DNA of 64,000 bases, taken from the NCBI GenBank assembly GCA_964234715.1, contig OZ174291.1; one strand, written 5' to 3'. Origin of the DNA: Podarcis melisellensis. Taxonomy: Eukaryota. A program made the translations under genes and the position numbers. The notes under the pieces were generated by a model. The model ran no database searches and was not told the origin of the DNA. It was given only the letters and a program-made list of their open reading frames with translations. Below are positions 5,099 to 60,969 of the stretch, piece by piece; within the stretch, counting starts at the first letter, position 1, and every line of letters begins with the position of its first letter.

Positions 5099-5614
5099 AT
5101 GGCTAACTGTGGACCTTCCTGCGCCGTCCCATCTTGTGCTTCCACCCCAGTCGTTGGCTTTGGATCAGCCGGTAGTCTTGGCGGTGGTCTTGGCGGTGGC
5201 CTTGGTGGCGGATTTGGCGGTGGATTTGGCTATGGTTCTGGCTATGGCTATGGCTCCGGTGCCCTGGTTGGATCCGGCGTCCCTTCTGCCAGTCTTGGTA
5301 TTCTTTCTGGAGTCCAGCCTTCATGCGTCAACCAGATCCCACCAGCAGAGGTCGTCATCCAGCCACCTGCCGCCATCGTGACCATCCCAGGACCCATCCT
5401 CTCTGCCAGTTGTGAGCCCGTGGCTGTTGGAGGCAACACCCCATGTGCTGCTGGTGGTTATGGATCCGGATTTGGCAGCGGATTTGGTGGTGGATATGGC
5501 AGAGGGCTCTATGGTGGTGCAGGTCTTCTGGGGTCTAGCTCTGGTGGTTTGGGGCGCCGTGGCCATTATGGGTTTGTGGGGCGTAGAGGCAGCATCTGCT
5601 ATACCCCATGCTAA
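5099..5614 (+). CDS. Corneous beta-protein (beta-keratin) g1, 171 aa, Gly-rich
   Basis: MANCGPSCAVPSCASTP start; core PSCVNQIPPAEVVIQPPAAIVTIPGPILSASCEP; C-terminus GRRGSICYTPC. Acceptor tctttccag ends at 5090, so ATG 5099 is the start rather than ORF start 5069. AATAAA at 6119-6124. Confidence 0.95.
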   Translation: MANCGPSCAVPSCASTPVVGFGSAGSLGGGLGGGLGGGFGGGFGYGSGYGYGSGALVGSGVPSASLGILSGVQPSCVNQIPPAEVVIQPPAAIVTIPGPILSASCEPVAVGGNTPCAAGGYGSGFGSGFGGGYGRGLYGGAGLLGSSSGGLGRRGHYGFVGRRGSICYTPC

Positions 5615-6689
5615 GCTCTCACAGTCTGTCAACAAGGAGGAAAGAAAAAGAGATCTGTGGTGGACTATTTTGGTCTGATTTTAGATATGCTGAGCACCCA
5701 AACTCTCTAGGCAATCCCAATGGGAGCTGGGAGAGTGTTCTGCATCCCTTGTAATCAGGCCCATCTAGAACATGCAGCTGTTTCCAGTTTAATTTTATCT
5801 CACTTTCCCCTGCTAGTTACTATGATATTTATTTGCCTATGTCTCTTTGAAACACACCAATTTGCATTGGGAAGAAAAGCACAAGATCCATTCCCTAACT
5901 CTATGAAATTAGCATGCAAGTGTAAATATGTGTAATTGGGACTTAATGTAAAGGAAGGTGGGAAGAATGTTCTATACATGTAGAACACCCTACTCTTCTT
6001 CCAGCCTGAAAAAATAATTCTAAAGGAGAAGCTGTTCACTGGAATGTGTTCTTTTTTGCTTTATTGTCTTCCAGTATGCCTAGTATTCACTTGAATACTT
6101 TTACTGTTTGAAATTCCCAATAAAACTTTTTCTGCATCATAGCAATGGCTTTCTGGTTTTCCTTTTATGTGGCAGCACAATGCTATACATATGTATCAAG
6201 AAATAAGTTCCTTTCAATACAGTTTAGTGCAACTTACTCAAAAGTAAGTAGGTTCAGGGTCACAACCTTAAGAACACAACACATATCCTCTTGGACTGGT
6301 TCAAGCATCCACCACCCTGTTAACAGTGCAGCAAGTATTTCCAGAACTTGCCACCTAGATATCATCAGAAGCCTTGAATGTTGGAGGAGGTGCAGGAGAT
6401 TTCACGGGGGTACTTAACAACAGAGAATATTGATAAGGCATAGAACCAATAAATCCAGAGAGAGGTATCACTGTTGTTTTAAGATGGTCTGCCCAGCAGT
6501 TGGAAGAAACTTCAAATTTGGATTTGAGGAACATTTACTGAACATTCCATTCATTTCTTAGATTCTGTAGAACAAATTGATTTACTGATACCAAATAACT
6601 ATAAAAATTGACCGCTGGTTTTTTTTAGTCTCAAAGGATTTAACCAATTGTTCTAGTACCTCTGGTGTCTTAGATGCTAGGAAGGCTGC

Positions 6690-7130
6690 CAAAGGCCTGA
6701 GAGAAGAGGAATGTTCTTGCCTGGCACTTAAAGATCTGTAATGAAGGCATCTATTGAACCTCCTTGGGGAGAGCAGTCCAAAAACAGAGAACCACAAAAG
6801 AGAATGACCATTTTCTTGTTGCTGTCCTTCAGACCTCTCATGGAGGAGGTACCTGAAGAAGGGTCTCAAATGGTGATCACATGGACTGGGTCAGTTCATA
6901 TGGGCAGAGGTGGTCCTTGAGATATTGCAGTCCTAAGCCATTTAAGGCTTTATTGGGTCAGGAAACTAATTAGCAGCCTGTGGAGTCAGGCAAGGATTGG
7001 TGTTATATGCTCAAACTGTCCTGCCCCAGTGAGCAACCCAGCCACCAAATTCTGCACCAGCCGATGCTTCTGAACTGTTTTCAGAGGCAGCTTCACATAC
7101 AATGCATTGCAGAAATCTCACCTAGTGGTA
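6690..7130 (-). mobile_element. Old L2-like LINE fragment
   Basis: Degenerate similarity to the L2 3' region at 62034-62468 (for example taaggcttta and gcattgcag motifs). Confidence 0.45.
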
Positions 7131-8068
7131 AAGGCAACAGAGGTTAGGCCAATGATGGCCAAACTTGGCCCTCCAGGTTTGGGACTACCATTCCCATCAT
7201 CCCTGACCACTGGTTCTGTTAGCTAGGAATCATAGGAGTTGTAGTCCCAAAACAGCTGGAGGGCCAGGTTTGGGCATCACTGTGTTAGGCTATCATTGTT
7301 CAGATAGATGCACAGCTGGGTCACCAGCCTAATCTTATGGAAGGCACTCCATGCCACCAAGGCCAACAGAACCTCAAGTGACAGCAGTGGAACCAGAAGG
7401 ACCCTCCAAGCTACGTGTCTGTTCCTTCGGGGGCTATGTAACCTCATCAAGAGCAGGCCACCTCCCATCTATCCAGTCTACGGACCACCCACTAACTGTA
7501 CCTCAGTCTTATCTGGACTGAGCTTCAGTTTGTTGGCTCTCATCCAGTCCATTACCAAGGAAGAAAACTGCCCAGCACATCCACTGACAAGCCTTGAGAT
7601 ATAAAAGAGAAGTAGAGCTGTGTGTCATCAGCATTTAGCATATTCGGCGTCGTGGTGAAAGGCTCCCCCTGGCACCCACCCCCATTGTTGACCTTTGTTG
7701 GGGGGAGGACAGCGCTGCCGGCGTGGCTGGAGGAGGCGGGCAGGGGCTGGAGGGCAGCTGATGACATACTCCAAAACTCCAGGTAACCCCCTCAGCAGTT
7801 TCATGTGGATATGAAACAGCATGAGGCATAAAATCAAACCCTTCATGGACCTCACAGAGCCAAAGAGCACTCCCCAAGCATCAGCTACTGGAAGCCTAAG
7901 TAGGACAGGAACCACTGCAGAACAGTGCCACTCACACTTAACTTAGGCTGGATCTAGACACATCAAAGAAGCGTTTCCGTGAAATGTGTTGCAAACTTTG
8001 CATGAGAAATTGGGTTGGCAAAAACAGGACTCCACAGCGCCATTTGGTGTCACAGTGTTAGAATGCAT

Positions 8069-8300
8069 TGTTGTTGTTTAGTCGTTTAGTCGTGTCCGAC
8101 TCTTCGTGACCTCATGGACCAGAGCACGCCAGGCACTCCTGTCTCCCACTGCCTCCCGCAGCTTGGTCAGACTCATGTTGGTAGCTTCGAAAACACTGTC
8201 CCACCATCTCGTCCTCTGTCGTCCTCTTCTCCTTGTGCCCTCAAACTTTCCCAACATCAGGGTCTTTTCCAGGGAGTCTTCTCTTCTCATGAGGTGGCCA
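8069..8300 (-). mobile_element. BovB (RTE) LINE 3' fragment
   Basis: GHLMRREDSLEKTLMLGKFEGTRRRGRQRTRW...VTKSRTRLND; (CAA)n tail. Confidence 0.9.
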
Positions 8301-8419
8301 TACATAATAAGACAATGACCTATCCCCCACAACAGCATATGAATCAACAGCAGTTTTCATGACACATGAAGGAAGATAATGACATGATAAAATTCAAAAC
8401 AGTAACTATTAATTACGTA

Positions 8420-8767
8420 AAGGTAAATATAACCTGACCATTAGGTCCAGTCGTGACCGACTCTGGTGTTGCGGCACTCATCTCACTTTATTGGCCGAGG
8501 GAGCCAGCGTAAAGCTTCCGGGTCATGTGGCCAGCATGACTAAGCCGCTGCTGGCGAACCAGAGCAGCGCACGAAACGCCGTTTACCTTCCCGCCAGAGC
8601 GGTACCTATTTATCTACTTGCACTTTGATGTGCTTTCGAACTGCTAGGGTGGCAGGAGCAGGGACCGAGCAACGGGAGCTCACCCCATCATGGGGATTCA
8701 AACTGCCGACCTTCTGATCAGCAAGTCCTAGGCTCTGTGGTTTAACCCACAGCGCCACCCGCGTCCC
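8420..8767 (-). mobile_element. Sauria SINE (Squam1), full length
   Basis: tRNA-derived head GGGACGCGGGTGGCGCTGTGGG and ACCTTT tail; TSD attaattac(g/a)ta at 8408-8419 and 8769-8780. Confidence 0.9.
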
Positions 8768-10190
8768 AATTAATTACATAGCTATATGGAAAATGCATCT
8801 GGAAGACAAAATGTATTGAGGAGGTAGTGATCTGACATGGAGCCATTCCTGCCTCTGTTCCTTCCCCCTCCCTCACTCTTGTTAAGTTTTTTGATGGTGT
8901 GAGAACAGTATTTAATGTCCTAAAAATGTTGGGAGGAGGTGACCCCTCCCCAAATGCCTTAATCAGTTGGGAGGATAATGCTGGGTACCTTCTTTGATGT
9001 TGAACATTGTTTTGAGGAAGTTAGGCATTGGGAGGGGGTGGCTATCTATAAAATCGGATGGTTTGGGCAGAGGTTTTTTTTTTGTAGCTCATGCATGGAC
9101 TGATTGGCCGCAGAGCCGTGCAAACTGAGGCTACTTGGAAGAGTCACTTCGCCGCTTCTTGAGGGCTTCCAAGTGGCAGATTGAAGTGCGTGCTTGCTGT
9201 TTTAGAACAAAATCTTTTAATCTTCTCACTCACTTGTGTAGTTTGCATTGCTTCTGAATCTCATTTTAAAAGAACCACCTTGCCTTTGGCAAGACAACAG
9301 CCTTTCAAAATCCTATTAAAACTATTTAGTTTAATTAATTCAACAACATTTATGAACTTGATCTAGGGATACCAGCTTTTTACAACCTGGTAATTACATC
9401 TCCAATGCCCCTCTGCTACCTGCTTGCCTTTTAGCACCTCCTTGGATTACCCCACTGCCTCCCTTGGGGTGATTCCACTCACTTTGGGAGTTATTGCTTT
9501 AGCATTGCAAGTTAGTAATTCTAACACTTGGAACAAAGAGACGGGATGTTTGTGTTTGGCTTTCTAGGGATGCAACTTTGGAATATATGAAAGTGTACTG
9601 TGGCCTGTGTGAGAACTGGTCAAGCCTGGGACCACCTACCCAACCTCCATCTTACTTGCCTGAGGCTGCAATCCTAACCCTGCTTACCTGGCAGTAAGCC
9701 CCATTGAATTCAATAGAACTTAGACTGATTTGGTTAGGGCTGTGCTGTAATTGGGACCATGGTAGACAAAGGATGTGAAAGCTGTGGTCCTCCAGCTATT
9801 GAACAACTACATATAGTACCCACCAGTCCCAGCAAGTATGTCTGTTGGTCCGGGTGCCAAACCAAGAGAGTTGATTCAGAATGAACTTTAATGGAAATAT
9901 GAAAAGTGTCAAGCAGGCAATTGTAAAAGAAGCAGGACAGGAACAAGGCAAAGGCACACAGTATACAATGTGGCTTTCAACTTCTTCTTGGTCTGGAGGC
10001 TTTCGGGACACATAGTGGGAAAGCAGGAGAAAGGAAAGATGGCAGAGACTCGTGTAAATGCTGTTGGCTTAGATGACGGTCCCAGAAATTCAGATTTTCC
10101 AGACTCCAAGGTGAGACGCTCAATAATGGATAGGCATTCAGGGTCATTCAAATCATCACCACACAGATTTTCTTCACAAGTTCAATAGGC

Positions 10191-10310
10191 CTAAAAGCAC
10201 ACACTGCCACGATGCCCCTGCAGAGCCCTCCTTCCAAAGAGCCCACCCCTTCTCAGACTATAGCCCCAAGAGCTTCCAAGGAGGCCATCCCCATAGCCCC
10301 ACCCACCATG
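10191..10310 (-). pseudogene. Orphan CBP C-terminal tail (displaced original 3' end of g2)
   Basis: Translates HGGWGYGDGLLGSSWGYSLRRGGLFGRRALQGHRGSVCF*, homologous to the g7 tail. Followed by a g7-like 3'UTR and ATTAAA at 9887-9892. No core box or start codon. Confidence 0.85.
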
Positions 10311-11373
10311 GTCAGGTTACATTTACCTTTACGTAATTAATAGTTACTGTTTTGAATTTTATCATGTCATTATCTTCCTTCATGCGTCATGAAAACTGCT
10401 GTTGATTTATATGCTGTTCTGGGGGATAGGTCATTGTCATATTATGCCATGTATGTATGGCCACCTCATGAGAAGAGATGTTTCCCCCTATTGCTGAGCA
10501 GACCATCTTAAAACAACAGTGATACCTCTCTCTGGATTTTTGCTTCTTAGCCTTATCAATATTCTCTGTTGTTAAGTACCCCCGTGATATCTCTTTCACC
10601 TCCTCCAACATTCAAGGCTTCTGATGATATCTAGGTGGCAAGTTCTGGAAATACTTGCTGCACTGTTAACAGGGTGGTGGATGCTTGAACCAGTCCAAGA
10701 GGATATGTGTTATGTTCTTAAGGTTGTGACCCTGAACCGACTTACTTTTGAGTAAGTTGCATTGAACTGTATTGAAAGGAACTTATTTCTTGGTAGATGT
10801 GTATAGGATTGTGCTGCCACATAAAGGGAAAACCAGAAAGCCAGTGCTATGATGCAGAAAAAGTTTTATTGGGAATTTCAAACAGTAAAAGTATTCAAGT
10901 GAATACTAAGCATACTGTAAGCCAATAAAGCAAAAAAGAACACACTCCAGTGAACAGCTTCTCCTTTAGAATTATTTTTCAGGCTGGAGGAAGAGTAGGG
11001 TGTTCTACATGTATAGAACATTCTTTCCACCTTCCTTTACATTAAGTCCCAATTACACATATTTACACTTGCATGCTAATTTCATAGAGATAGGGAATGG
11101 ATCTTGTGCTTTTCTTCCCAATGCGAATTGGTGTGTTTCAAAGAGACATAGGCAAATAAATATCATAGTAACTAGCAGGGGAAAGTGAGATAAAATTAAA
11201 CGGGAAACAGCTGCATGTTCTAGATGGGCCTGATTTCAAGGGATGCAGGACACTCTCCCAGCTCCCATTGGGATTGCCTAGGGAGTCTGGGTGCTCAGCA
11301 TATCTAAAATCAGACCGAAATAGTCCACCGCAGATCTCTTTTTCTTTCCTCCTTGTTGACAGACCGTGAGAGC

Positions 11374-11862
11374 TTAGCATGGGGTATAGCAGATGCTGCC
11401 TCTACGCCCCACAAACCCATAATGGCCACGGCCCCCCAAACCACCAGAGCTAGACCCCAGAAGACCTGCACCACCATAGAGCCCTCTGCCAAATCCGCTG
11501 CCAAATCCGGATCCATAACCACCAGCGGCACATGGGGTGTTGCCTCCGACAGACACAGGCTCACAACTGGCAGAGAGGATGGGTCCTGGGATGGTCAGGA
11601 CGGCAGGAGGTGGCTGGATCACAACCTCTGCTGGTGGGATCTGGTTGACGCATGATGGGGCAACTCCTGCCAGGACTCCGAGGTTGGTTGCTCTTTCAGC
11701 ACCTCCATAACCATAGCCGAGACCTCCGTAGCCATAGCCGAGACCTCCGTATCCGTAGCCAAGACCTCCATACCCATAGCCAAGACCTCTTGCTGATCCA
11801 AACCCAACAGTGGGAGTGGAAGCACAGGATGGGACAGCACAGGATGGACCACAGTCAGCCAT
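11374..11862 (-). CDS. Corneous beta-protein g2, 162 aa (type-B 5' part fused to g1-type 3' part)
   Basis: MADCGPSC start, GYGYGGL repeats and CBP core; C-terminus nearly identical to g1. Acceptor ggtttcag at 11881-11882; polyA signal at 10865-10870. Confidence 0.95.
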   Translation of the reverse strand: MADCGPSCAVPSCASTPTVGFGSARGLGYGYGGLGYGYGGLGYGYGGLGYGYGGAERATNLGVLAGVAPSCVNQIPPAEVVIQPPPAVLTIPGPILSASCEPVSVGGNTPCAAGGYGSGFGSGFGRGLYGGAGLLGSSSGGLGGRGHYGFVGRRGSICYTPC

Positions 11863-12731
11863 TGTTGTGTAGAGGTGAGTCTGAAACCAAGAAGACCATG
11901 GGACAAAATGAACATGTGGAATGCCACTTCAATGGGGAATGCAGGGGACATTTGAATCAGCTGCCTTTGACAGCTCTAACACTATGCCCTAATGCTTGGA
12001 TTCTTTATTGTCTTCTCTTTCTTTCACCACAGCCCTTCTCTTCATTGTGGGTCCCAAATCCAAATACTGGCAGCTCCAGGAATGTCTGAGAATGTCATCT
12101 ATCTGAAACTCTGGAGAATAGTTTCCAGTCAGTGAGGACAATACTGAACTAGGAGGTCCAATGGTCTGTCTTGGTAAAAAGCAACTCCCTAAGTTTCTAT
12201 TTAAACCAGACCTTTAGATGGAACAATGAATGCAGGAAACTTTTTTTCTTTCCTAGAGGAAGGGCCATTACTCACTGGCAGAACATATGTTTTGCATTCG
12301 ATCCCTAGAATCTGCAGGTTGGGCTAGGAATGAATGAACCCTGGAGAGCCTCAGACGATCAGAGAGGACAATACTGAACTACATGGATGAATTGTAAGGC
12401 AGCTTCCTATATTATTACTTTCTTCATCTGCCAAATCTTCCATGAAGAACAAATGTATATTAGCCTATGCAATAAATACTGTACTTCCCTTATGCTGACT
12501 TCTGTTATTTATCTTCCTGACTGAATTTTTGCTAAGGTTACATTGCTGGGGAAATATGAAAAACATTCCGTGGAATGCTGTCTTGTGTCTCAAGCCCAAT
12601 GCATGGAGAGTCATGAATGCTAAATTTGTACTTTACAATGAGGAAAGCTGGATTTGCACAACTTGTGATAGAATAAGACTCTCTCACCAGGAAAACAAAA
12701 ATGTCTAGTTTTAAAAGAATGCTATAAGATG

Positions 12732-12734
<3 letters not shown>

Positions 12735-13092: not shown

Positions 13093-13361
13093 GAGGGCTA
13101 TAGTGAATTGTTAGAGCATCTTCTTTGCATGCAGAAGGTCCTGACTTCACTCCCCAGTATCTCCAGGTAAGGTTTGGAAGAAAAACCTTCCTTGAAGCCC
13201 TGGAGAATTGCAGCCAGTCAAACATTACAGTGCTGGATGGATGAACACTCTGGTCTCGGTGCAAGGCAACTTCCTAAAACATTTGTGTTCAGAAGAAATA
13301 CATAGAAAATAAGTCAGCCAAGAAAATGGAGTATGGAGGATTCCTGATGGAAGAGCAGCAT

Positions 13362-13711
13362 AAAGGTAAAGGGACCCCTGACCATTTGGTCCAGTCGTGA
13401 CCGATTCTGGGGTTGCGGGACTCATCTCGCTTTATTGGCCAAGGGAGCCAGCGTACAGCTTCCGGGTCATGTGGCCAGCATGACAAAGCCGCTTCTAGCA
13501 AACCAGAGCAGCGCATGGAAACGCAGTTTACCTTCCCGCTGGAGCGGTACCTATTTATCTACTTGCACTTTGACGTGCTTTCGAACTGCTAGGTTGGCAG
13601 GAGCAGGGACCGAGCAACGGGAGCTCACCCCATTGCGGGGATTCGAACTGCCAACCTTCTGATCAGCAAGTCCTAGGCTCTGTGGTTTAACCCAAAGTGC
13701 CACCAGCGTCC
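13362..13711 (-). mobile_element. Sauria SINE in g2 intron
   Basis: Collinear with the 8420-8767 copy. Confidence 0.9.
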
Positions 13712-16820: not shown

Positions 16821-17070
16821 ACCTGCCAACCTAGCAGTTCGAAAGCACCTCCGGGTGCAAGTAGATAAATAGGGACCGCTTACCAGCGGGAAGGTAAACG
16901 GCGTTCCGTGTGCTGCGCTGGCTCACCAGATGCAGCTTGTCACGCTGGCCACGTGACCTGGAAGTGTCTGCGGACAGCGCTGGCTCCCGGCCTATAGAGT
17001 GAGATGAGCGCACAACCCTAGAGTCTGGCAAGACTGGCCCATACGGGCAGGGGTACCTTTACCTTTACCT
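16821..17070 (+). mobile_element. 5'-truncated Sauria SINE (second subfamily), g3 intron
   Basis: (ACCTTT)n tail; TSD ttaaggaaagctgg on both sides. Confidence 0.85.
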
Positions 17071-17213
17071 TTAAGGAAAGCTGGAAGGTGCCACCAGCTC
17101 TCTATCTTCTTCCTTCCTTCCTAAATGATATTTAGACAAACATATACACTTCTGTCTTTTACAGCACAAAACTCTGCATTTCACTCAGAAGTAAACCTGA
17201 ATGTGTTGTGCTT

Positions 17214-17460
17214 AAAGGTAAAGGGACCCCTGACCGTTAGGTCCAGTCGTGACCGACTCTGGGGTTGCAGCGCTCATCTCGCCTTATTGGTCGAGGGAGC
17301 CGGCATACAGCTTCTGGGTCATGTGGCCAGCATGACTAAGCCACTTCTGGCAAACCAGAGCAACACATGGAAACGCCATTTACCTTCCTGCTGGAGCGAT
17401 ACCTATTTATCTACTTGCACTTTGACGTGCTTTCGAACTGCTAGGTTGGCAGGAGCAGGG
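17214..17460 (-). mobile_element. Truncated Sauria SINE, g3 intron
   Basis: aaaggtaaagggacccctgacc...ctaggttggcaggagcaggg. Confidence 0.85.
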
Positions 17461-18323
17461 CTGTCTTATTTTTTTAAAGCTCATCCCCAACTTGCTAGAG
17501 AATGGTATACTGTGGTGCAGTATGTTCAAGATACATGTTGATAGCATTGTTGATAAAACATGCCTTTTCTTAAAAGAACCTTACTGGGTTATCTCATCAT
17601 TTTCTTATATTTCAGAACATCAGTACTGGGGTAGCCAACATAGCACCTTCCAGATGTTGTGGGTTAAAATGCCAAGAAAGGGGATCATTCCTTAGTGATA
17701 CAGCCCATACTTGGCATGCACAAGGTCCCAGGATCAGTCCCCTACATCTCCAGGTGGGGCCAGTAATGTCCCCTGTCTGGAACCCAGGAGAGTCATCAGC
17801 AATCAGTGTAGACCATGGGAGGGCAAACCCAAGCCCAGGGGCTGGATCCGGCCCAATCACCATCTAAATCCAGCCCACGGATGGTCCAGAATCAGCATGT
17901 TTTTACATGTGTCCTTTTATTTAAAATGCATCTCTGGGTTATTTCCTCCTGAAGCTTCCAAAGAAGAGGGAGACAGTATAGAATTACAACAGTGGTTTGC
18001 GGGAGGCCATAGCTCAGAGGCTGCAGAGGGGAGAAGCTGGGAAATATCGGGAAAGGAGCAGGAACAAGAAGAAGCACGAGGGGAGAGACAGCTGGCAGAC
18101 TGAGTGTCTTTAGAATGCATTCCAGACCCTTCTCTCTCCCAGAACCTGGCAGGCATTGAAAGTAGGAGAGCAGAGAGCTCAGAGGCAAAAGGCATAGAGA
18201 AGCCACCATAGGGAAGATGTATAATAGAAGAGACGGAGGGAGTGGGGTTTTCACTCGGAGCAACATCATTACTCTAAGAAGCAACATTTGTAAGCCTCTC
18301 TCTGTGAACATTGAATAAAATAC

Positions 18324-41210: not shown

Positions 41211-41213
41211 GGT

Positions 41214-47580: not shown

Positions 47581-48660
47581 GCTCTTATCTCTGTGGTTGC
47601 AATTTCCTGGGTGACGCGGACGCTGTTAGGTGGCTGAATGTGCACACATATTCGGTCCATTTAATCCCACTCTGTATGGCCCCAGGCTCTGGCAACCCAT
47701 GCTTTGCCACTGTTCCCACCCTTCCCAGTTCCTTGATCTTCTTAATACACAAAAGTTCTGCACACGGGATGTTTCATTAATTGTCACCTACACTTTTGGG
47801 AAACTACCATTTGTTGTAGTGCTTCACAACTCCCTAGGCATTCACAACCGACATAAAACCCCTTTCCCCAAAATACATTTACTCCATCAGTCAAAGGAAC
47901 TGCTTCAGATAATTTCCAATCTGCTGTCTATATTTACTTCCTTCATTTCAGCAAAGTCTGGTGAGGAGAGAGATGCTATTCTTGAATCCATCTCTTTCTG
48001 TATCTGCTTCATCACAAACTGAATTAGCTCCCTGCATATTAGACACGGACTCCGCCTCAACAGAAAACAGTCTCCAGGTTTGCTTACAGCAGCTTTTGCC
48101 TTTTGACTCCTAGTGACAGGGTAAACCTTCTCTCCGGCTCCCAGTATATTCTGCCTAAGAATTTTGGCACATCTTTCCCTCTCCAGTAAATCTTTGCCTC
48201 AGATACTGGGAGCTAATCTGGATGCCGTCGGTGACCTTTGCTGTTTCGTGAGGAAACATATTTGTGGAAGTATTTAGATCTTCTCTTAATAAACTTGTAC
48301 CTTGTAAACTTGTAAACTTGATTCTTGTACCTGTGTCTAGAGATGCCCAGTGTGTGTTGTTATTCATTAAAACTTTCTCCATTAACTCAGTGTCAAAGTT
48401 TGAAGCTTTCTCAAACCTCATTTTACAGAGTTTGACCTTTTGGGAGGGCTTGGACTGGTTTGGACTCAGTCTGACCCTTATGTTTCTCTCCCCTTATGGT
48501 TTTGATCTATGGGCTACTTTTAAAATGAGGCTGCATTTTAAATTGATTTTTAACCTGTATTTTAAATCTGGTTTTTTTTCTATTATGTTTTTATTGTAAT
48601 TTTACTGGTGTTAGCCGCCCTGAGCCCAGCTCTGAACGGGGAGGGCAGGGTGTAAATAAA

Positions 48661-48661
<1 letters not shown>

Positions 48662-48691
<30 letters not shown>

Positions 48692-48734
48692 CTTCTTCTT
48701 CTTCTTCTTCTTCTTCTTCTTCTTCTTCTTCTTC
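48662..48734. repeat. (TTC)n microsatellite at the tail of an L2-type 3' end (about 48450-48660)
   Basis: Directly visible. Confidence 0.9.
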
Positions 48735-49868
48735 AGGCGAGATGTCTACAGCTTTTGCCATTTTAACTGGGGAGCTGGGATACTAGGTGCTACTGACCTG
48801 ACTTCGCACCTTTCTCTGTGCAGTTTGCTTGCCTCTCTCCTCCTCTTCAAGACTAATTGGTCTGCTAACACAATCACCTTGTGGACATTCTGAGGATTTC
48901 TGTCTCTCAAAATTCGAGAAAATGTATAGAGAGACTTTTTTCTCCCTTTCTCATCTTGCTAGAAGCAGGGGTCATGCAGGGAACCAGAATCTTGCAGAAT
49001 TCAGTGGAAGTAAAAGGATATAGTTCTTCACAAAATGCATAAACTTCTAGATTCAGTACCAGAAGGTGTGGCGATTGCCACCAGCTTGGATGGCTTTAAA
49101 TGCAGATTACAAATAAAAAAATAAAGTCAAGGTTTAAATGTGCTTAATATATTTCTTTAACTCGTGTATGCAATAATTTAAAACTGCTATCAAAATACAG
49201 TATCTGACTGAAAGGCTGGATAATCCTGCAGCATTTGACTACATTATCTCCTATCAAAAATATGTTATTGTCTAAAGTCTTGTAACATATTGATTACAAA
49301 AGCTGTAGTCCACAATAAATTCCACACTGTGTACATATGCAAATGTTGCAAAACTACAAAAGATTATCCAGCTATTATGACTGTTGCTTCTCTGAATAAA
49401 TAATGGTTTGAGGCACTCTAAGAGGGGACTTGTTTTGAAAAAGGGGGAAAGGATAATTCTCTCAAGGCGAGAGAACTATAACCACATAGAACTATACCAT
49501 TCAGGGGGCCAGAGAGAAAGATGTCCTGCAAATGTTCCAATTTTAGTTTGGCCAAAAACTGCTTCAGACAGCTGAGGCCCTGGACACCTTGCTATGTGGA
49601 ACTGAGGCTTTACATTTAAAAACCAAGACAAACAGGTTATCAGAATGCAGAACAAGCTTTATTGAAAAGGTCAAAGTAAGAGCATTGAAAGGGGCAAAGA
49701 AGAAAATCGGTGTAGAAGGATCTTTTTTCTTCTGCACTCTGAAGCAAAGAACGGAGGATGAATTCCAGGAGTGATTGCTTGAATTCAGCTTTTCTGAACC
49801 ATGGCCGATAGATCTGTATCAAGCTCTCTGATTATCAGTTCAGGATATGCTTCTCAGGTTTAATTGGT

Positions 49869-50360
49869 CTATGAACAGATGCTAAAACGACGCCCGAACT
49901 TCCTTCCCCTCCCGTAGCCCAAACCATAGCCGAAACCTCCAGAGCTTCCAAGGAAACCAGACCCAAGGCCCAAGCCCCCATAGCCTCCTACAATCCCGGA
50001 ACCACCAACTGCACATGGAGTGTTGCCTCCAACAGCCACAGGCTCACAGCTGGCAGAGAGGATGGGCCCTGGGATGGTCACAATGCAGGCAGGTGGCTGG
50101 ACCACGACCTCTGCTGGTGGGATCTGGTTGATGGGTTTAGGGATAATCCCATCTAGGATGCCAAGGTTGGCTGCTCTTTCAGCACCTCCATTTCCATAGC
50201 CGAGACCACCAAATCCATAGCCGAATCCTCCATTTCCATAGCCGAGACCTCCCAATCCGTAGCCGAGACCACCATAGCCAAGACCTCCTGCTGAGCCAAA
50301 CCCAACGGTGGGGGTGGAAGCACAGGATGGGACAGCACAGGATGGACCACAGTCAACCAT
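49869..50360 (-). CDS. Corneous beta-protein g8, 163 aa
   Basis: CBP with variant core entry GILDGIIPKPINQIPP; acceptor 50379-50380; polyA signal 49658-49663. Confidence 0.95.
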   Translation of the reverse strand: MVDCGPSCAVPSCASTPTVGFGSAGGLGYGGLGYGLGGLGYGNGGFGYGFGGLGYGNGGAERAANLGILDGIIPKPINQIPPAEVVVQPPACIVTIPGPILSASCEPVAVGGNTPCAVGGSGIVGGYGGLGLGSGFLGSSGGFGYGLGYGRGRKFGRRFSICS

Positions 50361-50957
50361 TGTTGGATGGAGGTGAGTCTGAAACCAAAAACACCAAGGG
50401 ACAAAATAAGTGTGGGGTACATCACCTCAGTGTGGGTGGACCACAGCTAACCATGGCTGAAGAAGAATCTAAAGTATATAATTGAAGAACTGAGTTGAAT
50501 ACAGTATGGAGCATGAGAACCAAAGAGGGCCAAATAATTATAAAAGCTCAGATATAAGGTACTTCAGGGAGAGTCAGCGTGTAGTTTTTTCTGATGTTGC
50601 AGAATTCAATTCGCATCAGACCCAACCATCATGAACAATAGAGAAGGGTGATGAGACTATAGGAACTAGAGCCCTGTGGTAGACGCTGTAGAAAAAGAAG
50701 AAAATACTCACATACCTTTTTAGGTCTCCATGTTTCCATGATCGTGCTCTGAATAAAGAAGCTTGTTATGTCAACAATTCTATCAATCATTTTTTGACAG
50801 GCTGGACCACTATAAACTATTATCGCCCCAGGTGGGGATGAGTATGAAAAAATAAAGCTGCAATCTGTTATCTATTTACCTGGGGTTAAGCATTAGTGAA
50901 TACAATTGGGTTTACTTATTAGTAAAACGCAGAGTTTTGTGCTATAAAAGGCAGAAA

Positions 50958-52519: not shown

Positions 52520-54712
52520 TACTTGGATAACTGCACTGGGAAATGCAGACAGCTACAGATTTTGTAGCACAGCAATGTTTCAGTTTGACATTGTTTCAAA
52601 AAGGGGTGAATAAATTTTATTTTTCTTTAAGGGTCAATTGAATTGAATTTCTCTCCCATTCCTAAACTCACCTGCCTCTGTCACTGAAAAAACTTCATTC
52701 CTGTTTCTACTTAAACTTACTCTACTTACTCTACTCTACTTACTCTACTTGGTCCTTGTTCCCTACTGTCATGGTAGTATATATGGTTCTGACAAGATAT
52801 CACTGCACTCCCATCAGCCCCAGCCAGCATGGCCAATAGTCAGAAATTATGTGAGTGAAATCCACAAAAACTAGGGGGAATCCTGTTGGCTACCTCTGCC
52901 CTGCTTAAACTAAGCCTAAAGCAAATACATCCAATCCAGGAGTGAGGAATCTGTGGAACCTCCTCTATTGCTGAGGTTCATATCCAAGGAAAAGTGTGCA
53001 CAGTTCCCTATTCAGACGCGCTTCTTGTCATTTTGTAAGAATGCCAGAGGCTGAGCTATAAATGGCCAATAGCTATGATAGCTGTGTTTGAAATTCACCA
53101 GGTGCCAGGCTCATTGGCCACTTGCGACCAAGTGCTGATGCCCAGGCACCAGGATGGTGCCTGATGTCTACACTATCTGGAGGTGCATGACTGGGGATCC
53201 ATGGATCTTGGCTCTTTTCATACTCTAGCAGCACATCCTGTAGAATTCTGTTATATTTTATCTGCAAAATCAGAATGAACTTCATTCTGTTCTCAGTCAC
53301 CAACTTCAGGAGCCAAAAGGTTCTATTGGAAAATACAACTTTTGAGCCATCTGGCCCCAAAATGGCAACTAGGCATTCCATTTTGGCAACTGTAACCCTG
53401 GTTTAAGGAGCCATAGGTCACCTAGCTTATATACCTGAGCTTCCAACACTGTATGCATGTTCTATTTCCACTATCAGAGACAGTAAGCCTCTGAATACCA
53501 GTTGCGGGGAATCTCAGGTGGTGACTGTGCTGTTGCATCCAGGTCTTGTTTTCAGACTTCCCATTAAGAGATCTGGTTGGCCACTGGGAGAATAGGATGC
53601 TGGGCTTAATGGGTCACATTTAGCCTGATCCAGAAGGATTTTTTTTTAGAACTGCATAAATTCATGGAGAATGAGGGTGTCAATGGTCACGAGCCATGAT
53701 GACTATGTTCAATAGCTACTGTCAGCACGCTTTTGTATACCTATTGCTGGAAATCACTGCTGTCGGATTCAGGCCATGATAATGAGCTTTCCATAGACAT
53801 GTGTGATAACAGAATGCTGGGTTAGATGGGCCTTTAGTCTGATCCAGTCAACCCTCTTTATGTCCTTAAATCCCTGGTTCTTTGAAAACAGCTGACACTA
53901 TACGAACCTTTTATTTCTTCAAATATCTTCTTTGAAAATAATTCCCAAATTCTCAAACGCTTCCTTGCTTTATTGCGTACACTTATCCATACCTCACTAT
54001 ATGGTACGTTTGCATCATTGAAGACTGGAAGAGCCTTGTTCTCAATGACCAACCAGATGTTTATGGGAAGCCCGACAAGCACGAACTGAGCTAACAGCAA
54101 CTCTTTCCCCAAAAAACAATATCCTTGATTGTAATGCATTTTTTGTATGTTATTTTCACTTAGTACAGTATGTCCATTCTTATACACAATTTTGTACACA
54201 TCACCTGGCTGCAGGACTGCATGGAAATTTTTGTGTAAGTGTGGATTTCATAGGATTACACTGCTTCAATTCCTATACCATTTCAGAAAACGCAACCTGG
54301 ATCAAATTTCTCCCCTAATCTTACCTCCAACAGTGGAGGTTAAACATAAACAAAACCTGCTATGTGTTGTGCACAGAATGACTAACTAAAATCCTGGGTA
54401 TTAAAGTCAATTAGACTTCTGAGAAAATCAACAACTATTTTGAAAATAATGAACGGGGACAAAACACCTTTTGATCTGCCTGCCAGGAGGAACAGACAAG
54501 AATTTTTATTTTTCTTAATCTTTTATTAACTTTGTCTTGTGGAAGAATAACAATGAGGAGAGTGGGGTGCTGTGAAAACACTTAACACTTTTGCCTCGTT
54601 TCTTAATTAGGGCCATGATGCATTCCAAAAACTGCTTACTAATTAAAGCCGGAGGGGAAAGGAGGTGTATCCAAGCTGGATGTGGAGCCACCAGCGGATA
54701 AAGATGAAATGG

Positions 54713-54801
54713 TATAAAAGGGCTCCCTGAGCTGAGATCTTCCAACAGCTTCCTTTGGCTTCATCTCCTTCACTTCGTTTCTACTCCTCTGAGACTTTGG
54801 T
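54713..54801 (+). promoter_or_regulatory. g9 TATA, exon 1 and donor (type B)
   Basis: TATAAAA 54713-54719; agactttg|gtaagtca donor at 54800. Confidence 0.85.
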
Positions 54802-55653
54802 AAGTCAAGTTTGTTCTCATATGATGTTATATTTGAATAATTCTTGCAGTGGTCAGAGCATTCAGGTAACTGAACTCCAAAAGAAGGCTAAAATTCTATT
54901 ACTCTGTGAATTGGGTAGATCTTCCACCAGGAACCTTACCCTCTTAAGTTGTTGGCTGGCTACTTTTCTATATGTACCTTATGAAATCAAGTATTTAGCT
55001 GCCTGATTCTGAGTGTTAGTCCATCTAGCTCAGTTTTGTCTACACTAACCAGCTGAAGTTCTCTGAGTTTCAAGAAGGGAATCTTTAGCAGCTCAATCTG
55101 CAGATTCCAAGGACCAAACCTGGGATGTTCTGAATGAAAACCACGTGTTTGGCCACTGAACAATTGTCCTCCCCCTAAAATTATAGTAAGGTTCTAATCT
55201 TCATGTTTCCAAATAAATACCTGACTCAAATGAGCATAGGGAGTTGTCCTGTACCATGACAGACCATTGGAATCCCTAGTTCAGTTTTACCTACTCAGAT
55301 TGGCCGTTGTTCTACAGGCCTTGAAGCAGGGGACATTCCTAGACTATCCTGAAATTATCAGGGATTGGATTTGGGATCCACAACGAAGAGAAGGGCTGTA
55401 GTGACAAAAGCAGAGAAGAATAAAGGTTTCAGGAATGAGGGCTTAATGTTTTCAGAATTATAAAAGACAGCTGATTTTCAGTGATGGAGAAAGGAAGATG
55501 GATTGAGTTCAGTGAACTGGGAATGGGTAAAATATCCTACTGCCACAGGATGATTATGTCTGAAATATTCTCCCCACTGTCCATTGAAGTGATGTACCCC
55601 ACACTTATTTTGTCCCTTGGTGTTTTTGGTTTCAGACTCACCTCCATCCAACA

Positions 55654-56145
55654 ATGGTTGACTGTGGTCCATCCTGCGCTGTCCCATCCTGCGCTTCCAC
55701 CCCCACTGTTGGGTTTGGCTCAGCAGGAGGTCTTGGCTATGGTGGTCTCGGCTATGGATTGGGAGGTCTTGGCTATGGAAATGGAGGATTCGGCTATGGA
55801 TTTGGTGGTCTCGGCTATGGAAATGGAGGTGCTGAAAGAGCAGCCAACCTTGGCATCCTAGATGGGATTATCCCTAAACCCATCAACCAGATCCCACCAG
55901 CAGAGGTCGTGGTCCAGCCACCTGCCTGCATTGTGACCATCCCAGGGCCCATCCTCTCTGCCAGCTGTGAGCCTGTGGCTGTTGGAGGCAACACTCCATG
56001 TGCAGTTGGTGGTTCCGGGATCGTAGGAGGCTATGGGGGCTTGGGCCTTGGGTCTGGTTTCCTTGGAAGCTCTGGAGGTTTCGGCTATGGTTTGGGCTAC
56101 GGGAGGGGAAGGAAGTTCGGGCGTCGTTTTAGCATCTGTTCATAG
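55654..56145 (+). CDS. Corneous beta-protein g9, 163 aa (protein identical to g8)
   Basis: ORF translation identical to g8; acceptor AG 55634-55635; AATAAA 56351-56356. Confidence 0.95.
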   Translation: MVDCGPSCAVPSCASTPTVGFGSAGGLGYGGLGYGLGGLGYGNGGFGYGFGGLGYGNGGAERAANLGILDGIIPKPINQIPPAEVVVQPPACIVTIPGPILSASCEPVAVGGNTPCAVGGSGIVGGYGGLGLGSGFLGSSGGFGYGLGYGRGRKFGRRFSICS

Positions 56146-57227
56146 ACCAATTAAACCTGAGAAGCATATCCTGAACTGATAATCAGAGAGCTTGATACAG
56201 ATCTATCGGCCATGGTTCAGAAAAGCTGAATTCAAGCAATCACTCCTGGAATTCATCCTCCGTTCTTTGCTTCAGAGTGCAGAAGAAAAAAGATCCTTCT
56301 ACACCGATTTTCTTCTTTGCCCCTTTCAATGCTCTTACTTTGACCTTTTCAATAAAGCTTGTTCTGCATTCTGATAACCTGTTTGTCTTGGTTTTTAAAT
56401 GTAAAGCCTCAGTTCCACATAGCAAGGTGTCCAGGGCCTCAGCTGTCTGAAGCAGTTTTTGGCTAAACTAAAATTGGAACATTTGCAGGACATCTTTCTC
56501 TCTGGCCCCCTTAATGGTATAGTTCTATGAGGTTAAAATAAGGTACATTCACATTGAGAGAATTATCCTTTCCCCCTTTTTCAAAACAAGTCCCCTCTTA
56601 GAGTGCCTCAAACCATTATTTATTCAGAGAAACAACAGTCATAATAGCTGGATAATCTTTTGTAGTTTTGCAACATTTGCATACGTACACAGTGTGAAAT
56701 GTATTGTGGACTACAGCTATTGTAATCAATATGTTACAAGACTTTGGACAATAACATATTTTTGGTGGGTGTTAATGTAGTCAAATGCTGCAGGATTATC
56801 CAGCCTCTCAGTCAGATACTGTATTTTGATAACAGTTTTAAATTATTGCATACACAAGTTAAAGAAATATATTAAGCATTTAAAGCTATCCAAACTAGTG
56901 GCAATCGCCACATCTTCTGGTACTGAATCTAGAAGTTTATGCATTTTGTGAAGAACTATATCCTTTTGCTTCCACTGAATTCTGCAAGATTCTGGTTCCC
57001 TGCATGACCCCTGCTTCTAGCAAGATGAGAAAGGGAGAAAAAAGTCTCTCTATACATTTTCTCGAATTTTGAGAGACAGAAATCCTCAGAATGTCCACAA
57101 GGTGGTTGTGTTAGCAGACCAATCAGCCTTGAAGAGGAGGAGAGAGGCAAGCAAACTGCACAGAGAAAGGTGCGAAGTCAGGTCAGTAGCATCTTAGTGC
57201 CCCAGCTCCCCAGTTAAAATGGCAAAA

Positions 57228-57362
57228 NNNNNNNNNNNNNNNNNNNNNNNNNNNNNNNNNNNNNNNNNNNNNNNNNNNNNNNNNNNNNNNNNNNNNNNNN
57301 NNNNNNNNNNNNNNNNNNNNNNNNNNNNNNNNNNNNNNNNNNNNNNNNNNNNNNNNNNNNNN
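57228..57362. other. Assembly gap (135 N)
   Basis: Run of N. Confidence 1.
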
Positions 57363-57859
57363 ACCCAACCAGAGCTGGGCTCAGGGCGGCTAACACCAGT
57401 AAAATTACAATAAAAACATACCAGAAAAAAACCCAATTTAAAATACAGGTTAAAATTCAATTGAAAATGCAGCCTCATTTTAAAAGTAGCCCATAGATCA
57501 AAACTATAAGGGGAGAGAAACATAAGGGTCAGACTGAGTCCAAACCAGTCCAAGCCCTCCCAAAAGGTCAAACTCTGTAAAATGAGGTTTGAGATAGCCG
57601 CAAACTTTGACACTGAGTTAATGGAGGAAATTTAATGAATAACAACACACAGTGGGCATCTCTAGACACAGGTACAGGAATCACTTTATTAAGAGAAGAT
57701 CTAAATACTTCCACAAATATGTTTCCTCACAAAACAGCAAATGTCACAGATGGCATCCAGATTAGCTCCCAGTGTCTGAGGGAAAGATTTACTGGAGAGG
57801 GAAAGAAGAGCCAAAATTCTTAGGCAAAATATACTGGGAGCCGGAGAGAATGGTTGACT

Positions 57860-58007
57860 GGTTCTGGGCTGGTAGGAGGCTATGGCTATGGGTCTCCTTG
57901 GAAGCAATATCGGTGGCTAGCTTGGAGGTTCCCTTTATGGTCTGAGGAGGGGTGGGCTCTTTGGAAGGAAGGCCCTGCTGGGATGTCATGGTAGTGTGTG
58001 CTTTTAG
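57860..58007 (+). pseudogene. Orphan, decayed CBP C-terminal tail (displaced original 3' end of g9)
   Basis: GSGLVGGYGYG, then a 5-nt deletion versus g7, then LLGSNIGG*LGGSLYGLRRGGLFGRKALLGCHGSVCF* (internal TAG 57918-57920). 3'UTR with AATAAA 58294-58299. Confidence 0.88.
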
Positions 58008-60969
58008 ATATATTGGACTCTTGAAGAACAAATGTGTGGTGATGACAGGAATGACACTCAACGGAAAAAGATGATGCAGATCCATTACTGAGTGTCTCAT
58101 TCTGGATTCTGAGCTTTTGGGACCATCATCAAGCCAACAGCTTTTAAATGGCTCTCAGCAACCTTTCCTTACTCCTTTTCAAGTCTTTCCTCAAAGTCTG
58201 TAGACCAGTAATAAGTTCAGAGCCACGTTCCATTGTGTGTGCCTTTTCCTTGTTCATGTCTGCTTCTTGTCCAATTGCCCACTCAATATTTTCAATAAAA
58301 CTCATTCTGAATTCAAATATTTCTCTCTTTCTTGGTTTGTTACCTGGTCTTATTTCTCAAAAGGAAGGGGGGGAGGGTATTATCTCGTGCTGGAACAGTT
58401 TTGGAGTATTTTGTCCTAGGGAGTTCCTGAGCTAACAGAGAACCGAAGGGAGGACATACTAGGCTCATAAGTTAGTGGAAGAGTGGGAAACTGCATGAAT
58501 TCAATATTTATCGCATTTGTATCCCACCTTTTCTTCAGGGAGCTCAAGGTAGAACATACAGTCCTCCTCCTCATTTTATCCTTACAACAATCCTGTGAAT
58601 TTTGTTAGGCTGAGAGTGAGTTGACTGGCACAAGCTCACCCAGTGACCTTCATGGCCAAGTGGGGCTTTGAACCCTATTTCCCCATGTCTTAGTCCAACA
58701 CTCTAATCACTACACAACACTGGCTCCTTGGGCTTCCCAAATGTTGCTAAGGTACAACTTCAACCATCCCTGGCCACTGGTTGTACTTTGTTTTGGACCT
58801 AATATTTCTTAAAGTCTAACAGGAACCAAGTTAAATCTTCTTTGGGGTGGAAGGCGGATGCTCTCTGTCTCTGTGTTACCTGTCCAAAGAGAGATCCTTA
58901 CTGTTGACTTAGGAGCATCCCTTCATTATTGAGGACTTGGAGGATAGGTATATAGGAAGCTGCTTTACACTGAATCACACTGTTGGGTCTATCTAGATCA
59001 GTGCTGTCTTTAGTGACCGGCAGTGGTTTTCCGAGCTCGACTTGGAGATGCCAGGGAGTGCCTTCTGCATGCAAAGCAGGTGCTCTACCATGGCAATATG
59101 GTCCTTCCTGTAGAAGTAAAATAGAATCTCAGTCCTTATGATTCTGAATAAAAGGCTGGTTTAAGTAGGGGCATCAGGAGCTACTTCGTATGGCGTGAGA
59201 CCATTAGTTCATACAGCTCTGTATTGTCTATGCTGACTGTCAGTAGCTATCCAGGGTTTCCGATAGGGTTCTTTCCCAGCCCTGGTTGGAGATGCAATGG
59301 ATTGAAACTTGGATATTCTGCATGCAAAGCAGGTACTCTGCAACTGATATGTGGCTCTGTGGAATCTTAGTCAAAGGCAAGTGGAACAAGGGGTCTTCTC
59401 ACTGCTCACGTCTCAGGGATTGTGCTGAGGAGGGCTGCACTGAGGAGCAATGGTGGGAGTCTCCCCCTCCCCCTGCTCCTGAATCTTCCCAGGAGCAGTG
59501 GGACAGTATATGTCAGGAGCGTAGCTGAGCCAAGAGATGAAGGAGATGGAAGAGAAACAGGGTTTGGCTCTCAATATGACAGCCTGCAATTAGAGTTGGA
59601 GGAAGTGGGCTCGGCCCCCCTTCCCCAAGTGTTCACTGAGTTAGTTAGAGCAGACACAGAAAGCTCGCAAGACGAGGGAGGGGAAGAGATAGACGGCACT
59701 GGAGGGGTTGCTAAGCAACAATCAGATAGGCAGAGGACTGAGAGTTCATCCTTGGACAGTGTAGATTTCCCCCTTCCCTCTGCTCACGTCCAAAGAGCTG
59801 AAAAGGTCAGATTGCAACAATAGTGCAAAAGGGGAAAGGTGGGACGTTGGCGTTTTTCCTGTTGTGACACAAGTGATTTCGCAGAGTGACCAGACGATTT
59901 TTATGGAGCAGAGGGCTGTAGCCATGCTCTGATTGTATTGTGAATAAATAAATGAACAGCTAGGAGGAGGAGAACTGGGAGAGAGAGAGAGTTAATGGAC
60001 TCTCTTTCACTGGAAAGCGTCCATCCGCTCAGCCAAAGGTCAAGGAGAGCAGATAAGGTGGCAGCACAGAAAGCAAAGTGGTTGTGAGATCAGGTTGCAA
60101 GACATGGATGTGACGTGGATGACAAGAGGGGAAGTGGGTGGAATCCTTAATTGGCAACACCTTCATTCCTAGAAATGGATTCTTTGTTCTTTCACTGTGA
60201 TCATTAAAGTTTCTAACTGGTAAGAGACTCCTTTTGCTTTGTTCTGCTTATCTGCTGCCAAAGGAGGGGGCGGGGAGCCAAGTCCCTGAAGTCTGACCAG
60301 GTCTGTAACCTGAGGTACCACTGTATATCTGTTCTCATATATATCCCATATATATTTTGAAAATGCAGATTTTTTACATTAATCCTGCTAATGTCTTCAC
60401 CTGTTTACAGTACGTTTGTAAATACTCAATAAACCATTTCTGTTCCTTTCTAAATATAGATCTATTTATATTGATTTCTTAATGATGCCTAATTTCAAGG
60501 CACCTCTACCGGTGATGGGTTCTGACACTTTTGGCATGTGTAATCTCCCTCCCCTGGCAGACTGCTGGGAGAAGGAAGGAGCTGTTGGCTGGTGCTTGCA
60601 TAGAAAAATGCCTGGGAAGCACTTGCATGCTGCCTTGCCTTCCACGATGGAAGAGAGGATGAACAGAAACACAATGAAACAAATGCTTCAAGTAATTTGC
60701 CCAGAATGCCCTAGCACAACGACACTTCATAATGACTTAGAGAGGAAGAAATCTTGCCACAATTTCTTTCGAGTAGCGCTCAGCACTAGCAGTGGCAAGA
60801 ACACAGCTTTCAGGTTATATCTTTTTCAGGGTGGTGGGTTATGTCTTGGTGGGGGTGTAGCTGATGCTCCAGATGCTTCAGCTGTTGGGTGGTCTCCTAC
60901 TGAGTTCACGGATGTATGCTAATCATGTAGGTTAATTTCAACTCGACACGTGGTGGATAATTGCTGAAT

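Follow-up and report, generated by a model that had tools for sequence, protein, structure and literature searches.

Recurrent capture of paralog 3´ ends, leaving stranded tails, in a corneous beta protein gene cluster of lacertid lizards

The corneous beta protein (CBP, beta-keratin) genes on a 64,000-nt stretch of Podarcis melisellensis contig OZ174291.1 (the window; all window coordinates refer to the full stretch) record a recurrent rearrangement in which one gene takes up the 3´ end of a paralog and leaves its own tail behind. Nine intact CBP genes, g1 to g9, lie in the window in alternating orientations, as read from its list of open reading frames (ORFs), and three of them have been rebuilt in this way: g2 from g1 (event J1), g5 from g4 (J2) and g9 from g8 (J3). 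A fourth event, J4, joined the 3´ end of a1 to a3 in Lacerta agilis. We consider it likely, at a probability of roughly 0.72, that these are four independent captures of a paralog 3´ end by one-sided invasion.

Upstream regions and tails together define three types among the nine genes: A (g3, g4, g6 and g8), B (g2, g5, g7 and g9) and C (g1 only). The B-type genes have a common upstream sequence, and the B-type tail reads ..LRRGGLFGRK..GSVC. A block of ~400 bp, which begins ~50 bp before the ATG and ends where the conserved core does, is common to all nine paralogs, with 87-100% identity, and is kept alike through gene conversion. The nine tandem genes have uninterrupted ORFs, and a conserved splice acceptor (..TTTCAG/ACTCACC.., 22 nt upstream of the ATG) is present in all B-type genes of both species. 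Self-BLAST further groups (g4,g5), (g6,g7) and (g8,g9) as tandem duplicate units, between which the A-type flanks are homologous over only ~300-400 bp.

Self-BLAST and base-level alignments bear out an earlier note on this DNA, which had described inverted copies of the C-terminus, 3´ untranslated region (UTR) and flank of g1, g4 and g8 after g2, g5 and g9, respectively. In J1, g1 5091-6513 matches g2 11870-10477 in inverted orientation, and in J3 the g8 arm matches in two parts (48121-48634 to 57858-57370, and 48753-50432 to 57227-55582); the tracts are given in Table 1. Each captured segment contains the donor's own polyA signal (10870, 30302 and 56351). The description of the captured part as a C-terminus holds for g2, which received the core end and tail, but not for g5 and g9, which took the donor's whole coding exon. 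Directly after each copy lies a headless tail of the g7 (B) type with its own polyA signal, as had also been noted. When the window was searched by tBLASTn with head, core and all tail types, just three tails without a head came up, each of B type (E 1e-14 to 1e-16), and no isolated head or core. The polyA signal of each orphan tail lies 416-436 nt from the orphan start, versus 453 nt in g7.

The L. agilis locus, merged without conflicts from seven overlapping chromosome stretches into 63,269 bp (LA coordinates), has nine genes (a1 to a9) that match g1 to g9 in order and strand, and keeps the pre-insertion state at all three recipient genes. The orthologs of g2, g5 and g9 (a2, a5 and a9) are intact B-type genes that have kept their own tails, and the outgroup check proposed in the earlier note found no complete extra gene at any orphan position in L. 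agilis or in the window. The alignment between the two species is unbroken through the upstream region, head and core, then breaks, and resumes exactly at the orphans (J1: LA 10140-11349 with window 11513-12733 and LA 9650-10119 with 9853-10309; J2: LA 28036-30357 with 27707-30002 and LA 30618-31191 with 30630-31217; J3: LA 57791-59487 with 53841-55577 and LA 60114-61079 with 57859-58804). Since the donor flanks of g1, g4 and g8 have orthologs in L. agilis, the direction of copying is fixed. The recipients already existed as distinct genes when the lineage split from that of L. agilis, and so each of the three insertions is an event of its own, as the earlier note had proposed. A Zootoca protein (P0002) also combines the diagnostic g2 head with an intact B-type tail.

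J4 extends this pattern beyond the window. The L. agilis gene a1 and 748 bp of its flank (LA 2362-3637) are repeated in direct orientation at LA 17248-18484 (89%), such that a3, the g3 ortholog, carries a g1-type tail. The tract is followed by a headless A-type tail (LA 18484-18630), orthologous to the tail of g3, which is intact in the window. Junction A, the point of passage from recipient into donor sequence, lies at LA 17512-17526 (approximately codons 86-91 of a3), and junction B, at the far end of the tract, has a 3-bp GTT microhomology. Capture thus recurs in another lineage and in another recipient type. The earlier note had made an inverted paralog part of the process; because the J4 donor is in direct orientation, an inverted donor is not required.

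The four junctions have a common anatomy. According to the switch of informative sites, junction A of J1, J2, J3 and J4 always falls inside the shared homologous block; in g5 and g9 it is found ~37-60 bp before the ATG, at the 3´ end of the intron, and the donor-like tract spans the entire coding exon. Junction B is non-homologous in all four events, with AT at J1, TT at J2, a blunt join at J3 and GTT at J4. All four B junctions are at most ~33 nt from the 3´ end of the homology between donor and recipient and, compared with the pre-insertion orthologs, those of J2, J3 and J4 lie within 5 bp of GGTGGTT/C, two codons after NTPCAV. The earlier observation that all orphans begin within a few codons of NTPCAV needs correction for orphan 1, which begins ~12 codons past it when compared with its true ortholog. 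Relative to the homology edge, J4 is exactly on it and J1 is 33 nt beyond (both with C-type donors), while the homology of the A-type donors runs 22-28 nt further. An exact homology edge as the cause of the clustering was accordingly set aside; it suits the C-type donors and accounts for the whole only roughly. An unusual DNA structure was rejected as well, since none was predicted at the junction site when 100-nt windows of g7, g3 and a5 were folded as DNA on both strands (z-scores of -0.6 to +0.5, which also speaks against a hairpin).

Two short sequences mark the same place. The C-type genes have the octamer GCTGGTGG directly 5´ of the recurrent junction site (g1 ~5440-5447, with a match at the g2 site, and L. 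agilis a1 and a3), and the A- and B-type genes have GTTGGTGG in its place. GCTGGTGG is the Chi sequence of E. coli; it is noted here as a curiosity and is not known to function in vertebrates.

In J1, the proximal donor tract is the original copy, given that orthologous sequence is present in L. agilis. An apparent 178-bp filler proved to be a copy of 8272-8441, farther along the flank of g1. Because the distal copy at 10486-10308 matches that stretch, the J1 tract skips donor 6514-8271. This internal skip of 1.76 kb coincides with an imperfect 10-bp match between the donor sites (10477-10486 vs 6504-6513 and 8272-8281). Most of the skipped donor DNA is ancestral, being found in L. agilis, which makes the skip either a jump between templates or a deletion that the copy suffered later, rather than sequence gained by the donor. 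Junction A of J1 is placed at 11598-11590, around codons 88-91 of g2, with the informative-site switch consistent at 120/127 sites, and junction B lies at 10308/10307. Orphan 1 is 90% orthologous to the a2 tail and flank. J1 lies 33 nt deeper in the tail than the site used by the other three events, and those 33 nt are gone from both the gene and the orphan, a loss that the removal of a non-homologous flap would predict. The J1 copy also holds the end of a BovB element and 25 bp of a short interspersed nuclear element (SINE) that have no L. agilis counterpart; J1 therefore postdates these lineage-specific transposable element insertions.

The elements concerned are a BovB-like long interspersed nuclear element fragment (8068-8335) and a ~350-bp SINE (8417-8768, with ATTAATTAC as its target-site duplication), and L. 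agilis has neither of them at the orthologous position. SINEs related to this one lie elsewhere in the window (13361-13711, 16822-17067, 17213-17460, 27172-27484, 40085-40442, 41207-41528 and 42419-42713).

J2 is the junction to which a test with contigs from public sequencing runs was applied. Its junction A lies at ~29546-29552 and its junction B at 30497, where the 2-bp TT overlap places the start of orphan 2 at 30496-30498. The flank of orphan 2 (30630-31217) is orthologous to the sequence 3´ of a5. The junction at 30497 is spanned by a 943-bp contig of the probable source sample (X1) with 0 differences, by a 465-bp contig of an independent conspecific sample (X4) with 1 difference, and by contigs of 324 bp and 115 bp from two related species (X5 and X9). 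Separate donor-type contigs in X1 and X4 end exactly at 30497. Since independent contigs span this position and donor-type contigs stop there, J2 is real. It predates the split of these congeners and postdates the split from Lacerta.

For J3, junction A lies at ~55588-55600 and junction B at 57858/57859; the g8 flank is continuous across 48121 in L. agilis. Orphan 3 is 88.8% orthologous to the a9 tail and flank, with the alignment beginning exactly at 57859. Divergence between the g8 and g9 arms is 0-1.3% up to ~56481 (coding sequence (CDS) and 3´ UTR), then 4-7%, and reaches 9% (9.3%) at the far end. This gradient suggests an old event whose proximal part was homogenized afterwards. A gap of Ns (57228-57362) interrupts the captured flank of g9; both of its sides are collinear with the g8 arm, and each side independently shows one J3 junction. 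The donor interval opposite the gap measures 118 bp, including a (CTT)24 microsatellite, versus 142 bp in the recipient. Microsatellites are a typical cause of assembly gaps. Given its location in non-coding captured flank, the gap poses no reading-frame issue.

The proteins of g8 and g9 are identical (163 aa). Their L. agilis orthologs a8 (193 aa) and a9 (190 aa) have a common expanded GLGSGFG repeat in the head, and thus the divergent partners g8/g9 and a8/a9 evolve in concert inside each species.

The events were dated with the donor ortholog of the other species as outgroup. Donors and copies differ by 3-6%, versus 8-9% between orthologs, and have 28-89 derived sites in common relative to L. 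agilis. Ages relative to the species split (t/T) are ~0.5 for J1, ~0.7 for J2, 0.3-0.9 for J3 and ~0.3 for J4. A dating of the middle part of J3 was dropped because the L. agilis alignment is unreliable there, with an apparent divergence of 17%. A maximum-likelihood tree of tail and 3´ UTR agrees with the grouping anticipated earlier, with captured tails beside their donors and orphans among the B-type sequences. Every captured tail is grouped with its donor from the same species; orphan 1, orphan 3 and the orphan of L. agilis each join the intact ortholog from the other species at a support of 99-100 (orphan 1 with a2, 99/97; orphan 3 with a9, 100/99). Orphan 2 falls in the B clade on a long branch, a placement that we attribute to recent homogenization of the a5 tail with a7.

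The genes a5 and a7 of L. agilis are 96.8% identical across 950 bp, from upstream through the tail (29658-30602 vs 45443-46389), which resembles the result of a recent two-ended conversion of the ordinary kind between B-type genes on one strand. Their homogenization blurs the orthology of a5 and orphan 2 in the tail.

How could such genes arise? We infer a double-strand break as the lesion, and the order of the repair steps, as follows. A break inside the shared block would be repaired by two-ended conversion, and the block would stay homogeneous. A break at or just past the 3´ edge of the block would instead start a capture: the head-side end would invade a paralog via the shared block, and DNA synthesis would proceed into the donor's tail, 3´ UTR and flank over 0.5-3 kb. 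The tail-side end, without homology with which to capture the new strand, would be rejoined to the extended end through end joining. The recipient would retain its own promoter, exon 1 and intron, would encode the donor's tail or whole coding exon and would take over the donor's polyA site, and its own tail and UTR would be left directly downstream as a non-functional orphan. A filter of this kind at the homology edge would account for junctions near that edge, for the flap loss at J1 and for donors of either orientation. The earlier note had likewise proposed a break after the core, one-sided invasion and end joining. One junction in core homology and one non-homologous junction with 0-3 bp are as that proposal has it, but a template switch would leave the same signature.

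Several points weigh against capture by one-sided invasion. No sequence feature tells a two-ended break followed by invasion and end joining from a template switch at a stalled fork. Random breaks poorly meet the clustering of three junctions within 5 bp (in simulation, p ~0.07 with 65 nt allowed and 0.015 with 150 nt). The J2 donor is 125 bp short compared with L. agilis (merged locus 21942-22066) at 22593/22594, 0-3 bp from the tract end, and copying that does not touch the donor does not predict such an indel; it could be a donor-side scar of J2, an insertion in L. agilis or chance. The part of the J2 and J3 tracts upstream of the ATG may reflect later conversion between the partners rather than the original event, and read support is limited to J2. 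A donor-side scar as a general feature was rejected, because the indel is present at J2 alone and, set against the other species, the J3 and J4 donors show no break where the tract ends. A Zootoca vivipara locus (L008) was tried as a second genomic outgroup and given up (~73% identical, aligned in the CDS only and not clearly orthologous); it could not polarize the 125-bp indel.

We think it rather unlikely, though well worth keeping in view, that the captures were instead born of replication. A fork would stall where the glycine-rich tail begins, and the nascent strand would switch via the core to a paralog and return by microhomology, either by fork stalling and template switching/microhomology-mediated break-induced replication (FoSTeS/MMBIR) or by a restarted fork turning at inverted repeats. 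A fixed stall site predicts the three of four B junctions that fall within 5 bp at the core/tail boundary; the 2-3 bp of microhomology at three junctions and the second template jump in J1 are also in keeping with such switching. On the other hand, J3 is blunt, J1 lies 33 nt off the cluster and has lost 33 nt of recipient tail (which better fits flap removal at a broken end), the site has no unusual single-strand structure on the z-scores given above, and the clustering is weakly significant. A homology-edge filter leaves part of the clustering of three junctions (within 5 bp) unaccounted for, which makes a fixed site of stalling or breakage, or a switch during replication, conceivable.

A more specific and doubtful proposal is that the core/tail boundary itself, at GGTGGTT/C (the codons GG after NTPCAV), is a preferred site of breakage or fork stalling and that, together with the homogenized core, it makes tails and 3´ UTRs exchangeable cassettes. 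Its basis is that three of the four events, which involve two species and a different gene each time, lie within 5 bp of this sequence. If true, single-exon structural genes would have a built-in means of module swapping.

It is very improbable that the polarity is reversed, with old captures lost in L. agilis by precise deletion between a ~25-nt direct repeat, GGTTCYGGG..GGCTATGG, flanking each insertion. A short direct repeat does exist at J2 and J3 and could restore an intact B-type gene, and at the far end of J3 the copy differs from its donor (9.3%) by as much as the donor and its ortholog differ. Such a history nevertheless needs three independent precise deletions in L. agilis, with an intact g2-type protein present in Zootoca as well. 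J1 has no flanking direct repeat and has lost recipient tail, and so could not have reverted precisely; its copy also holds transposable element sequence missing from L. agilis, and the derived sites common to donor and copy argue in the same direction.

Scarcely credible, too, is the reading of the orphans as remnants of same-strand genes with deleted heads, which the earlier note had raised against itself, or as assembly artifacts. The assembly gap inside the J3 tract and the restriction of read support to J2 speak for it. Against it are the nine genes in both species with nothing extra at the orphan positions, the absence of head or core remnants from the window by tBLASTn, the 3-9% divergence of copies from donors, which makes them distinct loci and not misplaced donor reads, the spanning of J2 in four runs with separate donor-type contigs ending at 30497, and the collinearity of both gap sides with the donor arm.

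A single ancestral capture, followed by duplication of whole units and homogenization of the inverted pairs, would suit the tandem duplicate units and the starts of orphans 2 and 3 (≤3 bp apart), but it is next to impossible: the units were separate before the L. agilis split and are intact there, which refutes a single origin, the three junctions have unrelated sequences on the donor side, with A-type flank homology between units limited to ~300-400 bp, and J1 differs in donor type and relative orientation.

Two familiar routes were also rejected. Non-allelic homologous recombination, by unequal crossing-over or inversion, does not fit, as junction B is non-homologous and gene order, number and strands are the same as in L. 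agilis. Retroposition was discarded because the copies pass the polyA signal by ~195 bp (J2), ~560 bp plus the distal piece (J1) and ~1.5 kb (J3), and no A tract is present at any junction.

The features discussed are collected in Table 1. The closest proteins to the window genes are PF02422 proteins of lacertids; g7 is 92% identical to an L. agilis protein and g3 is nearly identical to a Podarcis muralis protein, as befits a Podarcis-like lacertid whose own species has no entry in the protein database. The six genes scanned for the beta-sheet core domain PF02422 (g1, g2, g5, g7, g8 and g9) score 33-37 bits, above the cut-off of 25.

Table 1. CBP genes, donor and captured tracts, and orphan tails in the window
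Feature	Position	Strand	Description	Evidence
g1	5099-5614	+	C-type, tail ..GRRGSICYTPC; J1 donor; ortholog a1 in L. agilis	PF02422, 34 bits
g2	11374-11862	-	CBP chimera that combines a B-type head, core and upstream region with a g1-type tail; upstream region orthologous to a2	ORF intact; PF02422
g3	18811-19320	+	A-type	ORF
g4	23012-23521	-	A-type; J2 donor; gene and flank orthologous to L. agilis a4	
g5	29586-30077	+	B-type upstream region; J2 recipient	ORF
g6	35835-36338	-	A-type	ORF
g7	44246-44755	+	sole intact B-type gene in the window; B-type tail reference	ORF, tBLASTn, PF02422
g8	49869-50360	-	A-type; J3 donor	ORF, alignment
g9	55654-56145	+	B-type upstream region; J3 recipient	ORF, alignment
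J1 proximal donor tract	5375-6513	+	g1 core end, tail, 3´ UTR and flank	inverted match to 11598-10477, 2-7% substitutions
J1 distal donor tract	8272-8441	+	BovB 3´ end and first 25 bp of SINE absent in L. agilis	91% match to 10486-10308
Segment captured by g2	10308-11590	-	g1-derived core end, tail, 3´ UTR (polyA signal 10870) and flank	
Orphan 1	9887-10307	-	headless B-type tail, 38 codons, frame open; own 3´ UTR, polyA signal 9892	
J2 donor arm	22594-23560	-	g4 and 3´ flank	match to 30497-29547, 93.7%
J2 g4-like tract in g5	29547-30497	+	CDS 29586-30077, polyA signal 30302	
Orphan 2	30498-30937	+	headless B-type tail, frame open, C-terminus altered; 3´ UTR, polyA signal 30932	
J3 donor arm	48121-50432	-	g8 and 1.75 kb of 3´ flank; (CTT)24 at 48662-48734	
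J3 g8-like tract in g9	55582-57858	+	CDS 55654-56145, polyA signal 56351	
Orphan 3	57859-58299	+	decayed headless B-type tail with 5-bp deletion and in-frame stop; 3´ UTR, polyA signal 58294	

Coupled homologous and non-homologous double-strand-break repair was reportedly described by Richardson and Jasin in 2000. One-sided invasion as this kind of repair is attributed to Belmaaza & Chartrand 1994 in PMC4888836, and it is widely seen in plant gene targeting. As in those cases, homology resolves one end here and end joining the other, and donor sequence beside the homology is copied while the donor is retained. The known cases are induced breaks in reporters or transgenes; those described here are natural, germline, fixed and recurrent in one family, with the states before and after both visible. 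Hybrid opsin, glycophorin and CYP21 genes arise by unequal crossing-over or inversion between paralogs. They too are chimeric with a switch point in conserved sequence, but both of their junctions are homologous and the whole interval has an altered copy number or orientation, whereas the CBP cluster has kept the order and number of its genes, is joined on one side without homology and still holds the tail that was replaced.

Long-tract gene conversion and aborted break-induced replication in mammalian cells (PMC4888836, PMC6067765) similarly yield kilobase tracts from a homologous template, and template switching, to which the J1 jump is similar, is known there. The usual template in that setting is the sister chromatid, in contrast to a diverged paralog at a distance of 2-15 kb, oriented either way, with synthesis that runs on beyond the homology. 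For PLP1, FoSTeS/MMBIR and coupled homologous and non-homologous recombination are described in PMC2583991, which cites Woodward 2005. Those events resemble ours in having one junction in homology or repeats and the other at microhomology, in allowing inverted insertions and in placing breakpoints near a particular architecture, but they span 100 kb to megabases and cause disease, whereas here 0.5-1.8 kb is involved and an intact gene is rebuilt. Concerted evolution of CBP genes in the epidermal differentiation complex (EDC) has been discussed for the same gene family and clade (PMC11431283, on Podarcis muralis; PMC7393497), and the homogenized head/core block is the expected footprint of such conversion. 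Conversion is invoked in those two papers in general terms only, and neither has non-homologous capture of tails and flanks or stranded tails. Because captured tails or orphans are not described in the searchable CBP/EDC literature, where gene conversion is mentioned generally, the new aspect is a known repair outcome acting as a recurrent, fixed route of re-pairing gene parts.

The earlier note had presented the process as module shuffling and diversification, which is partly apt. New combinations of head and tail were made in g2 and a3. J2 and J3 made no new proteins; they put the partner's coding exon and 3´ UTR behind a B-type promoter and intron, and judging from sequence g5 and g9 appear to duplicate the partner protein under another promoter, with this species apparently having lost three of its four B-type tails.

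One-sided invasion is known mainly from engineered breaks, and this cluster probably offers four natural, fixed cases from the vertebrate germline, resolved to the base and with the pre-event allele preserved in a sister lineage. For gene families with an intronless CDS, capture re-pairs a promoter with a coding exon, tail and 3´ UTR with no need of exon shuffling, unequal crossing-over or retroposition, and the stranded tail that it leaves is diagnostic. That signature, a headless tail directly after paralog-derived flank, can be searched for and can gauge the frequency of capture in CBP, keratin-associated and other tandem families, and the question of a hotspot at the core/tail boundary thereby becomes countable. 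It also explains why CBP trees built from tails may disagree with those built from upstream regions.

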